A program made the position numbers and the translations under genes. A model generated the notes under the pieces. That model was not told the DNA's origin and did not search any database. It saw only the letters and a list, made by a program, of their open reading frames with translations. 64,000 bases of DNA, taken from sequence record ON529860.1. One strand, given 5' to 3'. Shown in pieces: positions 3,151 through 27,899 of the stretch (its first letter is position 1; every line of letters starts with the position of its first letter).

Positions 3151-3353
3151 ATAAGTTGGCAGGAGTTTTCAGATATGGCGAACCATACCCAGGGCGACCC
3201 TCCTGCCAGGAACCCCCGTCTCGGTTTCTTTCACTGGCCCCGACACGAGCACCTGTCAAAGCCTATCTAGCCGCCAGGCTTGCGGAACGTCACGGGCGAT
3301 TAGGCGCCTCGGGATGAACAGCGTCGCGGACGGCGTAGCATCGGCTTGCCGTG

Positions 3354-3383
3354 ATTACTGGCAGACGGCGCCGGTGGTGTCAA
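3354..3383 (-). promoter_or_regulatory. sigma70-like promoter
   Basis: TTGACA-N17/18-(C)AGTAAT directly downstream of a terminator. Confidence 0.55.
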
Positions 3384-3388
3384 CAATG

Positions 3389-3420
3389 AAAAACGCCCCG
3401 ACCTTTCGATCGGGGCGTTC
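3389..3420 (-). terminator. intrinsic terminator
   Basis: AACGCCCCGA/TCGGGGCGTT stem followed by a U-tract on the minus strand. Confidence 0.85.
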
Positions 3421-3421
3421 T

Positions 3422-3733
3422 TCAGAGGTTCGCCATCCACTGCTTGCGGCAGCGCGTGTGATCCTTCCAGGACTTGCCGCCGGGGCGCGACGCCATGAGG
3501 TCGTCGTAGGACGACGGAAGGACCATGCGTCGGCCACGGGCGCGGTAGAGGCGATCGTGGGCTTCGCCGATGTTGCGCCGCCGCTCCTGCATGGTGCGGG
3601 GGCAGCGGTGCATGTAGCGCCAGCGGTGGCGGAAGCGACGGCAGCGGTAGGGCTCGCCGGGCTCCAGGTAGAGGACGCGCCAGCCCACGAAGTAGAAGCC
3701 GGAGTGGGTGACGCGTTCGAATTGGGGCTTCAT
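3422..3733 (-). CDS. small Arg-rich basic protein
   Basis: GGAGG SD; RCPRTMQERR...LPSSYDD...SWKDH..KQW pattern; followed by a terminator. Confidence 0.75.
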   Translation of the reverse strand: MKPQFERVTHSGFYFVGWRVLYLEPGEPYRCRRFRHRWRYMHRCPRTMQERRRNIGEAHDRLYRARGRRMVLPSSYDDLMASRPGGKSWKDHTRCRKQWMANL

Positions 3734-3833
3734 GTCAGCCTCCTGCTAGGTTGAGTACCTAGCGGGTGCTGTATTCCAGGTAGAATTTGATCATGAGGTC
3801 ATCCTAGCCCAAGCGGGGCTGTTCGTCTAGGAA

Positions 3834-5785: not shown

Positions 5786-5917
5786 TTACAGGAAACCTTC
5801 CAGGGAGACGCCACCGGTGGTGGGGGACTTCGTCGACAGTTTCGGCGCATGCGCGAGCGTCGACAGCGCCGTGGCGGCGGTCGAAAGCGGGCTCAGCTTG
5901 TGCGACAAGGTGGTCAC
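5786..5917 (-). CDS. putative 43-aa leader peptide of the tRNA array
   Basis: GTG ACC ACC...TTC CTG TAA between a promoter and a terminator; residues 2-34 use only T/L/S/H/K/P/A. Confidence 0.6.
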   Translation of the reverse strand: MTTLSHKLSPLSTAATALSTLAHAPKLSTKSPTTGGVSLEGFL

Positions 5918-5969
5918 GATGAAGGTCCAGTCCGAAGAAGGAGCGCAAGTGCGCTGTGATGAAGTCTGA

Positions 5970-25397: not shown

Positions 25398-25946
25398 TTA
25401 CTTGGCCTTGCGACCGCGACGGGGAGTCTTGGAGACGGCGGTCGTGTCGGCGGCTTCGGCGACAGCCGAAACGTCAATGGCGTCCTCGTTGTCCAGGTCC
25501 GACGAGTCGTCGGCCGGGGCGGCGGAGAAGTCCTTCACCTCGGGCTCCGGCAGGTGGGCGGCGGCGGCCGCAGCAGCGGCGGCCTTGGCCTGCACTTCAG
25601 CCTGGGCTGCCGCAGCAGCTTGGGCGGCGGCGGCTTCCAGAGCCTGCTGCTGAGCGATCGCGGCGGCCATGGCGGCTTGCTGTTGTTGCAGGGCCTGGGC
25701 GGCCTGCGACGCGGCCGGCGACTGCCCGTTCTCGTCCTTGCCGGTGGCGCGGTCGAGCACGCGCTGCGAGGGCGCGGGGCCTTCCGGCGGGGTCACAGTG
25801 GCGAAGGGCGCGTAGGCGGCCGGGTTCGCCGGGACGAAGCGAGTCCACGAATAGCCGGCGCCGACGACGAGGTCACGCGCGTTGGGGCGGGTGTGACGTT
25901 CGGGGTTGCCGTTGGAGTCGTAGATGATGACGGTGTTGTCGGCCAT
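25398..25946 (-). CDS. Ala/Gln-rich hypothetical protein
   Basis: MADNTVII start; low-complexity coiled region; basic tail TPRRGRKAK. Confidence 0.7.
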   Translation of the reverse strand: MADNTVIIYDSNGNPERHTRPNARDLVVGAGYSWTRFVPANPAAYAPFATVTPPEGPAPSQRVLDRATGKDENGQSPAASQAAQALQQQQAAMAAAIAQQQALEAAAAQAAAAAQAEVQAKAAAAAAAAAHLPEPEVKDFSAAPADDSSDLDNEDAIDVSAVAEAADTTAVSKTPRRGRKAK

Positions 25947-26017
25947 GTGCGGCGTAAATCCTGCGTATCGGGTAGATGCGAAAAAGGGCGCAGTCGAGCC
26001 GCGCGAGACTAGGCTTT

Positions 26018-26047
26018 CTGGCATGAATCCTGCTCAAAGTCAAGATT
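26018..26047 (-). promoter_or_regulatory. candidate late promoter AATCTTGAC-N11-TTCATGCCAG
   Basis: Same bipartite motif and spacing upstream of the portal gene (50007-50036). Confidence 0.5.
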
Positions 26048-26088
26048 TCCAGCACTGAGCGCCAGGAATCACGGCAATCAGAGTCCCC

Positions 26089-26137
26089 TTGACGAGCGAT
26101 CTAATCTCGATCTAAATCCGATCGTCTTTAGATCGAG
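26089..26137 (+). promoter_or_regulatory. plus-strand promoter overlapped by an 11-bp inverted repeat
   Basis: TTGACG(26089)-N17-CTAAAT; CTCGATCTAAA/TTTAGATCGAG at 26106-26137. Confidence 0.55.
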
Positions 26138-26146
26138 AGGAAACCC

Positions 26147-26317
26147 ATGGACAAACTGTATAGCTGGTCGAGCAAGCGCGCCGGCGGCCGCATCACCATC
26201 AAGCATGCGACCGGAAAGATCGTGAACGTGGACGTGATCGAACCCATCAACGGCAAGGTCGTCGCGATCGACAAGGACGGCCGGTCCTATGAACTGGTCG
26301 TCGCTCCGCCGATTTGA
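26147..26317 (+). CDS. 56-aa beta-rich protein, the only supported plus-strand CDS
   Basis: GAGAGG SD; MDKLYSWSSKRAGGRITIKHATGKIVNVDVIEPINGKVVAIDKDGRSYELVVAPPI. Confidence 0.75.
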   Translation: MDKLYSWSSKRAGGRITIKHATGKIVNVDVIEPINGKVVAIDKDGRSYELVVAPPI

Positions 26318-26353
26318 TCCACATATCCACAACAGCCCCGCTTCTGTGGATAA
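26315..26353. promoter_or_regulatory. three DnaA-box-like sites
   Basis: TGATCCACA 26315-23, ATATCCACA 26323-31, TGTGGATAA (reverse complement TTATCCACA) 26345-53. Confidence 0.6.
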
Positions 26354-26367
26354 GTCAGGATTCCTGA

Positions 26368-26396
26368 TTGACGCTCCAGGGCGACCCCGCTACATC
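26368..26396 (+). promoter_or_regulatory. sigma70 promoter of the large RNA
   Basis: TTGACG-N15-GCTACATC matches the Caulobacter TTGACG...GCTANAWC consensus. Confidence 0.8.
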
Positions 26397-26401
26397 CCTA
26401 A

Positions 26402-26913
26402 TCGTCGCTTCGGAAACGGAGCGGCCGGCAACCGGGCCTCGGCCCTACTAGCCGGGCTTCCAAGGGTATGCGGCCTCCGGGCTGATCCCACGGGAGTTGA
26501 GACCGGACGCCGGGGTGACCCGGTCCATCCGCCGAGACATGGTATCTCAAGGCTGCCGCAGCCCAAGAGACCACCCCTCGGACCGCCCGAGGCCGTAAGG
26601 CTGGAGGTCAGGAGTCTCAGGAGATCGGTCAGCAATGATCCGGTCGACCCTAAGGCGTCGCGGACTTCGCATCCTCGGGTGCGGGAGCCAAGATGTAGAG
26701 ATGCGGGTCTAGGCGTCACAGCTTCGACCTCCAGGTATGAGCCCCTCCACGGCGACGTGAAGGAAGCGTCAGCCTCACCTTCTTCGGGGAAACCTGATGC
26801 CCTGGTGAACTCTCCTGCCCAGACTGTAATGGTCGAAAGCAGGCGCGAAGTCGGACCAGAACCAGATTGTCGGGAAGGCCCGCCTCGTATCTTCGGATGC
26901 AGGCGGGCCTTTT
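26402..26913 (+). ncRNA. ~510-nt large structured non-coding RNA of unknown family
   Basis: Bounded by a promoter and terminator, no plus-strand ORF of 60 aa or more, multiple GNRA/UNCG hairpins and long-range helices. Confidence 0.7.
26876..26913 (+). terminator. intrinsic terminator (plus strand)
   Basis: AGGCCCGCC...cTTCGg...GGCGGGCCT-TTT. Confidence 0.8.
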
Positions 26914-26925
26914 GCGTTCTGCGCC

Positions 26926-26958
26926 AAGAAAAAAGGGCCGCCCCTAGAGGCGGCCCTT
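26926..26958 (-). terminator. intrinsic terminator (minus strand, convergent)
   Basis: AAGGGCCGCC-TCTAGG-GGCGGCCCTT-TTTT. Confidence 0.85.
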
Positions 26959-26963
26959 GTGGT

Positions 26964-27899
26964 TCAGGTCGACACCGTGAACGTCACCTCGACGGGAGGC
27001 GAGGTCCGCGTGATGGTGGTCGCGGTCAGGGTGACCGTGAAGTCGCCGCCGACGTAGCCGTGGCGGTAGAAAGACAGGCGCTGGATGTTCTGATAGACGA
27101 ACCCATCCGTCGTTCCGTCGACAATGTCGATGCCCTCGGACGGATTCTCCAGGTGGACCTTGCCGGCGGCGTCGGTGCGCAGCGTCAGCACCAGGTCGTT
27201 TTCCGGAGCCTTGGCGGTCACGGTCAGCGTAATCGCATAGAGTTCCGTCAACTTCTTGCCCGAGACCTTGTTGGTCAAGCCGAAGCTGAACGGGATGATC
27301 CAGTCGCGCCCGGCGGCGTTCGGCAGGGCGTACACACCCTCGACCGGCGTGACGACCGTCAGATCGTTCGGGTAGCGGGCGGCTCCGGCCAGTTCGATTT
27401 CGCCGTTCGAGGCGACCGTCATCCCGCCGATCGGATTGCCGGAGCCGTGGGTCAGGTAGCCTTCGGGCGACTGGAAGGCCGGCTCGGCGTCCGGCGTCAC
27501 CTCAGGCTCGACAAGTTCAGCCGCCGCGACGACGGTGATCTCGTAGGTTTCCTCGACCGTTTCCAAGCCGTTATGGGCTCGGACCGTGACGGACAGCGGG
27601 TCCAGGGCGGAGGTTTCGACCGCGCCTGCCACAAAGCGGGTCCCATCTAGGGCGATGCGCCCGCCGGCGTCGTCGATCAGGGTCAGGGTGGCGTCGGGGT
27701 CGGACAGGTAGACTTCGCCTACCGGCGCCCCCGCCTCGGATTCCGCCGCCAGCGTGCCGCCGCTGTAGAACAGGCGCAAGGGCAGCCGGCCCTGGCTTCC
27801 GGCGCCGCTCATGCGGCCCGAGATACGGCGCGGCGTGGGGTCGCCCGGAGAGGCTTTCGCCAGGGCGGAGAGATTGATACGGCGAGTACGCACAGCCAT
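26964..27899 (-). CDS. cadherin/Ig-like domain putative virion protein
   Basis: ESEAGAPVGEV.LSDPD...LIDDAGGRIAL.G.......SVTVRA......EETYEITV cadherin-like repeat. Confidence 0.7.
   Translation of the reverse strand: MAVRTRRINLSALAKASPGDPTPRRISGRMSGAGSQGRLPLRLFYSGGTLAAESEAGAPVGEVYLSDPDATLTLIDDAGGRIALDGTRFVAGAVETSALDPLSVTVRAHNGLETVEETYEITVVAAAELVEPEVTPDAEPAFQSPEGYLTHGSGNPIGGMTVASNGEIELAGAARYPNDLTVVTPVEGVYALPNAAGRDWIIPFSFGLTNKVSGKKLTELYAITLTVTAKAPENDLVLTLRTDAAGKVHLENPSEGIDIVDGTTDGFVYQNIQRLSFYRHGYVGGDFTVTLTATTITRTSPPVEVTFTVST

Follow-up and report, generated by a model that had tools for sequence, protein, structure and literature searches.

A short array of DnaA boxes stands directly ahead of the promoter of a large structured non-coding RNA in Brevundimonas phage vB_BpoS-Papperlapapp and is retained together with that promoter in six related phages, and we lean towards the view that host DnaA bound at this array controls, probably as an activator, the consensus RpoD promoter of the RNA. 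The window analysed here comprises positions 1–64000 of the phage sequence (ON529860.1); Papperlapapp is a jumbo siphophage of the Dolichocephalovirinae isolated on Brevundimonas pondensis LVF1, with a genome of 356,874 bp (65.5% GC) and 583 annotated features, the majority of them without an assigned function. The features of the locus are collected in Table 1.

Table 1. Features of the DnaA-box locus of Papperlapapp (positions in the 64,000-nucleotide window)
Feature	Position	Strand	Remarks
Conserved leader/control region of the divergent head-gene operon (gp400 onwards)	26025–26075	-	Invariant stretches in seven phages
Small ORF, 56 aa, PAPPERLAPAPP_00410	26147–26317	+	In Papperlapapp, Kabachok and Domovoi only; runs into the box array
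DnaA box 1, TGATCCACA	26315–26323	+	8/9 to consensus TTATCCACA; one base in common with box 2
DnaA box 2, ATATCCACA	26323–26331	+	8/9; forward half of the convergent pair, 13 bp from box 3
DnaA box 3, TTATCCACA (plus strand: TGTGGATAA)	26345–26353	-	Perfect consensus, 9/9
GANTC (GATTC), CcrM-type site	26359–26363	.	Centre of the small dyad TCAGGA-T-TCCTGA
-35 of the RNA promoter, TTGACGC (host RpoD type)	26368–26374	+	TTGAC invariant in seven phages
-10 of the RNA promoter, GCTACATC	26389–26396	+	CTA[C/A]A kept in seven phages
Structured non-coding RNA, ~510 nt	26401–26915	+	Predicted 5' end; intrinsic terminator 26875–26915

The box array and the promoter of the structured RNA

The array and the RNA gene occupy an unannotated gap within the head-gene module. 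Its left-hand neighbours, encoded on the minus strand, are gp400 (PHROG 10854), a head protein and two large proteins. On the right, again on the minus strand, come a 311-aa protein, a second protein whose counterpart in CcrColossus and phiCbK carries the annotation minor capsid protein, and the major capsid protein. A motif like AAGTCAAGATTTCCAGCAC (window 26036–26055) immediately precedes gp400, without variation, in the seven Brevundimonas phages compared below and is also present ahead of the gp400 homologues in CcrColossus and CcrPW (loci 2890–2930; 5890–5930); it may be a late promoter or a leader element. The slot 3' of the RNA terminator is variable, being filled by the 311-aa gene in Papperlapapp, Kabachok, Gurke and Kikimora, by a 143-aa gene in Marchewka (locus 3313–3744) and Bambus, and in Domovoi (locus 2535–2885) by approximately 350 bp of non-coding DNA in which a unit of ~35 nt is twice repeated.

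A DnaA box was taken as a 9-mer with at most one mismatch to the consensus TTATCCACA, and boxes 1, 2 and 3 all match the consensus at this threshold. The array is 39 bp long. The three boxes, the GATTC and the promoter reported in the initial annotation were exact in position, and the gap between the array and the -35, estimated there at ~15 bp, measures 14 bp. A search of all 356,874 bp that allowed up to one mismatch yielded 22 boxes, compared with 31 for a reversed-pattern control, and DnaA boxes overall are not enriched in Papperlapapp; the array is, however, the sole place in the genome at which two boxes lie 50 bp or less apart. First-order Markov genomes (n = 100) held 17.8 ± 4.5 boxes, with a pair in 6/100 and a triple within 50 bp in 0/100, and the Poisson expectation for the triple is ~7e-5. 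The cluster exceeds chance.

The Caulobacter RpoD (sigma-73) consensus, quoted in PMC8144410 as TTGaCgS-N10-14-GCtANAWC, was searched for as TTGACGS-N10-14-GCTANAWC and has one full match in the 64-kb window, at 26368–26396, where it specifies a start site for the RNA predicted at 26400–26403; shuffled windows gave no match (0/100). An E. coli-style promoter scan reported no sigma-70 site at the RNA promoter. The consensus fold of the RNA contains 166 predicted pairs, 40 of them with compensatory changes, and features a long-range helix that pairs the two ends of the RNA, as well as a terminator hairpin that is GC-rich, conserved and followed by a U-run. No Rfam family matched the RNA at gathering or relaxed thresholds. 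A hypothetical protein of ~212 aa annotated across the RNA gene (positions 1890–2528 of the Kabachok locus and 1890–2534 of the Domovoi locus) was rejected as a spurious ORF because of the covariation and of 1-nt indels between clades.

RNA-seq cDNA contigs from four runs (three wastewater, one viral) map within 26415–26871, and in three of the four runs no contig came from the flanking 1.2 kb; these contigs speak to presence only, carry neither transcript ends nor strand and may include DNA, and the library adapter found beside 26415 in one of them is not a mapped 5' end. One wastewater contig differs from the RNA (26423–26610) by 19 substitutions and 3 indels in 188 nt, which indicates that further unsequenced relatives of the RNA circulate in sewage. 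Exact-motif scans for distant relatives gave 4 matches to the 3' motif and 0 to the 5' motif in IMG/VR, and 14 matches in JGI metagenomes; all of these were chance matches in unrelated DNA, so that the comparison remains at seven phages.

Conservation of the boxes and their linkage to the RNA gene

The comparison set consisted of Papperlapapp and six other B. pondensis jumbo phages (Kabachok, Domovoi, Marchewka, Bambus, Gurke and Kikimora), which represent only three clades, at 97%, 87% and 77% identity, and hence a shallow comparative depth. The initial annotation had named a lack of conservation in relatives as grounds for abandoning its proposal; the boxes are kept in all seven phages. Box 3 with two flanking bases (TCTGTGGATAA) is invariant in 7/7, as is the forward-box core ATCCACA, in which positions 3–9 are fixed and variation is confined to positions 1–2, the forward boxes of the relatives matching the consensus at 7–8 of 9 positions. 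Every phage has 14 bp between box 3 and the -35, although half of these spacer bases differ. Between Papperlapapp and Gurke the box positions are identical at 18/18, as against 17/46 (37%) of the non-motif positions in the stretch that starts at the forward box and ends at the -10 (Fisher 1.8e-6, with a mask chosen post hoc on an alignment that had already been inspected). Judged by the aligned sequences, the DnaA boxes are under purifying selection. When five relatives were scanned genome-wide, the array at the RNA locus was again the sole clustered site in each; the array supplies the genome's only perfect box in Marchewka, Domovoi and Kikimora, and box 3 is the sole perfect box kept at one locus among the six genomes searched.

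Gurke and Kikimora have a single forward box, CAATCCACA, 12 bp from box 3 when the alignment is anchored on box 3. As this box takes the place of box 2, what is conserved is a convergent pair separated by about two helical turns. Box 1 is a further forward copy at an 8-bp offset, present in five phages and without a counterpart in Gurke and Kikimora; its core ATCCACA is invariant in the five, its positions 1–2 vary (TG, TA, CA, CG), and its bases 1–3 form the stop codon of the small ORF in three phages. The initial annotation had labelled a box of this array as the G-box of the Caulobacter Cori, a label that does not hold across the relatives (box 1 position 2 is G or A) because positions 1–2 vary and overlap a stop codon.

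The convergent pair forms an inverted repeat, which in Gurke and Kikimora extends to a perfect 9-bp dyad (ATCCACAGA/TCTGTGGAT). Such a repeat would also suit the operator of another dimeric phage or host regulator reading ATCCACA-N16/17-TGTGGAT, with a coincidental likeness to DnaA boxes, and the majority of the 583 annotated features of the phage lack an assigned function. We nevertheless regard a foreign operator as unlikely, given that coincidence would have to account for a 9/9 DnaA match kept in seven phages as well as for second and third matches at 7–8/9, that a simple helix-turn-helix dimer would not usually have its half-sites two helical turns apart, and that a genome search found no DnaA-like DNA-binding domain encoded by the phage.

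Boxes and RNA occur together in 7/7 phages and are both absent in 4/4 relatives (CcrColossus, CcrPW, phiCbK and Bajun). No DnaA-box cluster was found anywhere in these four genomes, and a covariance model built on the 5' domain of the RNA had no match in them (best E 0.43), compared with a score of 216 bits against the RNA itself. The syntenic spot is occupied by a protein gene in CcrColossus and CcrPW and, judged by annotation, by only a short gap in phiCbK and Bajun. Within the seven phages, a block of ~230 bp (window 26090–26317) comprising the small ORF and its own promoter is confined to Papperlapapp, Kabachok and Domovoi, and an apparent 3' remnant of it is seen in Marchewka and Bambus. 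The small ORF, which had no Pfam or PHROG match, has an RpoD-like promoter (TTGACG, 16 nt, TCTAAATC), and a 17-bp near-perfect palindrome at 26105–26138 overlaps the -10 of this promoter and the leader. The distance between the boxes and the gp400 leader region differs among the phages and shifts with the ~230-bp block, whereas the distance between the boxes and the RNA promoter is constant; the boxes thus travel with the RNA promoter.

These distances also bear on whether the boxes act on their neighbours instead, either on the divergent head-gene operon or by stopping small-ORF transcription before it reads into the RNA gene. The boxes lie ~80 bp (Marchewka, Bambus) or ~145 bp (Gurke, Kikimora) from the divergent gene, and in three phages a small-ORF transcript would enter the boxes with no terminator between; however, the spacing to the divergent gene changes by more than a factor of three between phages, against a fixed one to the RNA -35, and the small ORF is absent in 4/7 phages that keep the boxes, so that an action on neighbouring transcription seems very unlikely. 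By sequence comparison, the arrangement looked for in a DnaA-regulated promoter, namely boxes beside a promoter and conserved together with it, is present at the RNA locus.

The spacer between box 3 and the -35 contains the GATTC site and the dyad around it. The site is GATTC in five phages, GATAT in Gurke and GATGT in Kikimora. GANTC occurs 149 times in the 64-kb window compared with 291 ± 16 in shuffles, an approximately two-fold under-representation (~1 per 430 bp) which suggests selection tied to host methylation or restriction, and one GANTC in 82 bp is within chance at the density of the window. The conserved GANTC looked for in a CcrM/GcrA methylation-dependent promoter was not found, the site being lost in 2/7 phages. 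A functional role for the CcrM site named in the initial annotation is unsupported in view of the chance-level frequency and of the absence in Gurke and Kikimora, and the GATTC is probably incidental. In the surrounding dyad (26355–26367), three pairs are preserved in Gurke and Kikimora by swapped bases (CAG...CTG to GAC...GTC); the dyad may be the site of a second regulator or a product of chance.

Features of a possible replication origin at the locus

The second reading offered in the initial annotation was a DnaA-dependent phage origin with an adjacent structured, possibly primer-like RNA. At such an origin, DnaA would recruit the host helicase and primase and the adjacent transcript would open or prime the DNA. 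Several observations are in keeping with such a transcription-assisted origin. No DnaB_C-type helicase was detected in the 357-kb genome, and in phiCbK-like phages the polymerase is T7-like, the helicase lacks a primase domain and no SSB has been detected, so that host replication proteins may be borrowed (PMC3556154); the lambda origin makes use of DnaA-stimulated transcription (PMC8203912). Perfect convergent box pairs are, moreover, common in bacterial genomes, and were directly upstream of dnaA in two of the five checked; at a spacing of 12–13 bp they occur in at least 119 bacterial species, compared with a rough chance estimate of a few tens. A relaxed convergent pair was found in 9/401 sampled alphaproteobacterial genomes, which is about the chance rate, and the host lineage therefore lends the convergent geometry no extra support. 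The overlap of two forward boxes seen in the phage (TTATCCACATATCCACA), opposite a perfect box in inverted orientation, was also observed in an unrelated bacterium, in the Alicyclobacillus mengziensis chromosome at ~1,078,175, far from dnaA.

The surroundings of the array argue against an origin. An oriC-type combination of strong and weak boxes, an AT-rich unwinding element and DnaA-trios was not found at the array: there are only two or three boxes, with no further box at two mismatches or fewer within ±250 bp; no run of three or more DnaA-trios lies near the array; and the lowest-GC 30-mer, at 33–40% GC, is differently placed in each clade, leaving no conserved AT-rich unwinding element. 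The strand-composition switch of an oriC-type origin was likewise not seen at 26 kb, the GC skew being positive from 20 to 100 kb, although this is weak evidence as phage skew mostly follows transcription. Iterons beside the boxes, as in origins of the P1 oriR/pSC101 type, were not found in 25900–27000, where the direct repeats are chance two-copy matches only. The array is embedded in the head-gene module, and ~77 kb separate it from the gene for the DNA polymerase, which is of the T7-like family A (genome 305582–307036, outside the window); the four relatives of the same subfamily that lack the RNA have no box cluster anywhere. The RNA itself ends at a strong terminator that is conserved, and its fold covaries, as is typical of a free RNA. 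In transcript-primed origins such as ColE1 RNA II and the T7 and T4 origin promoters, there is likewise a promoter making a structured transcript of ~500 nt; however, their primers are not released by an intrinsic terminator and need a downstream region that unwinds or forms a hybrid, whereas the phage RNA ends at its conserved terminator. With origin features absent and the RNA terminated and folded, this second reading is disfavoured, and we consider an origin at the array quite improbable.

Host DnaA as a probable regulator of the RNA and comparison with known systems

The reading that we prefer remains control of the RNA by host DnaA. Host DnaA would bind the convergent pair, and in five phages the extra overlapping box as well, the pair being centred ~53 and ~75 bp upstream of the predicted RNA start; bound DnaA would modulate, and most probably activate, the host RpoD promoter driving the 510-nt RNA; and the output of RNA would track how much DnaA the infected cell contains, or its nucleotide state, and in this way the licensing of the host for replication. 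Owing to the overlap of boxes 1 and 2, simultaneous occupancy of both would not be easy. No phage-encoded DnaA domain III or IV (Bac_DnaA, Bac_DnaA_C) was found in the 357-kb genome; a Bac_DnaA_C match of 14 bits was rejected as sub-threshold and interrupted by an internal stop, and Bac_DnaA gave no match. Control of the RNA by host DnaA, as put forward in the initial annotation, fits the conservation of the boxes, the fixed 14-bp spacing and the co-occurrence with the RNA; DnaA binding, the sign of its effect and the timing at the G1-S transition are inferences. As the promoter is already at consensus, an activator is perhaps unneeded, and repression or fine-tuning is equally conceivable.

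The closest parallels are in Caulobacter, where all four characterised direct DnaA targets (hdaA, gcrA, ftsZ and mipZ) are activated and carry 1 to 6 boxes (PMC3193534). The DnaA-activated promoters of Caulobacter likewise have boxes in an RpoD-dependent promoter, and the phage host likewise belongs to the Caulobacteraceae (PMC3193534; PMC8203912); the Papperlapapp site differs in being on a lytic jumbo phage, in serving a large non-coding RNA and in having a perfect box in a convergent pair, and its regulation by DnaA is putative. The Caulobacter origin has only moderate G-boxes (with a T-to-G change) and weak W-boxes (PMC6393856, PMC4468827), and by these preferences, which are borrowed from the Caulobacter literature, the perfect box 3 should bind DnaA at least as well as any Caulobacter origin box.

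E. coli DnaA in vivo prefers same-orientation double boxes 2–3 bp apart, and many single consensus boxes are unbound (PMC11317965). The double boxes of nrdAB, mioC and purH and the autoregulation of dnaA resemble the phage locus in that boxes near promoter elements confer DnaA-dependent control (PMC11317965; PMC8203912), but the phage pair is convergent and 12–13 bp apart, and its same-orientation boxes overlap at an 8-bp offset. At lambda pR/ori-lambda, a phage promoter is stimulated by host DnaA, which couples it to the host initiator (PMC8203912); transcription in lambda, however, serves the origin and O and P, whereas Papperlapapp lacks origin features here and makes a structured RNA that ends at a terminator.

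The injection-stop region of T5-like phages offers a further precedent, with conserved host DnaA boxes kept by a lytic phage at a place that is not an origin, although the boxes of T5 number eight, are paired at a 3-bp spacing within large inverted repeats and have no promoter-RNA unit beside them (10.1101/866236). A tethering role has been proposed for those eight boxes (10.1101/866236), and the boxes of Papperlapapp might similarly attach phage DNA to membrane-bound DnaA or titrate host DnaA, with no role at the promoter; many genome copies could then block re-initiation in the host or shift the DnaA regulon, and a perfect box 3 should out-compete the moderate G-boxes and weak W-boxes of a Caulobacter-type origin. 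Neither a fixed 14-bp gap to the -35 nor strict co-occurrence with one RNA gene would be required of such a site, though, and two or three boxes per genome make a weak sink compared with the eight-box arrays of T5, so that we think a sink or tether quite unlikely.

The promoters of phiCbK-like and Delta-like Caulobacterales phages have been found by EMSA and lacZ fusions to be wired to the host through sites for CtrA, a master regulator of its cell cycle; DnaA sites were also sought in such phages, with no positional signal (PMC9437464). The Papperlapapp cluster would be the DnaA counterpart of this CtrA wiring, in phages that are probably outside the data set of that study.

More tentatively, and with considerable doubt, the phage may use host DnaA as a sensor of replication competence that switches on the large structured RNA. 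A sharper alternative to the sensor is that the RNA and the boxes together form a transcription-activated, DnaA-assisted origin in a jumbo phage without a primase or DnaB of its own.

The geometry of the site is notable in its own right, with a perfect consensus where the Caulobacter origin is deliberately weak, and a convergent pair two helical turns apart. If control of the RNA by host DnaA is correct, the module would give a first regulatory handle, in timing and host state, on an orphan phage RNA of 510 nt, and would form a DnaA arm of phage control complementing the CtrA-wired early genes. A promoter-locked DnaA module would mean that these phages heed the replication initiator in addition to CtrA, and phages that infect swarmer cells would then read both halves of the cell-cycle oscillator of the Caulobacterales.
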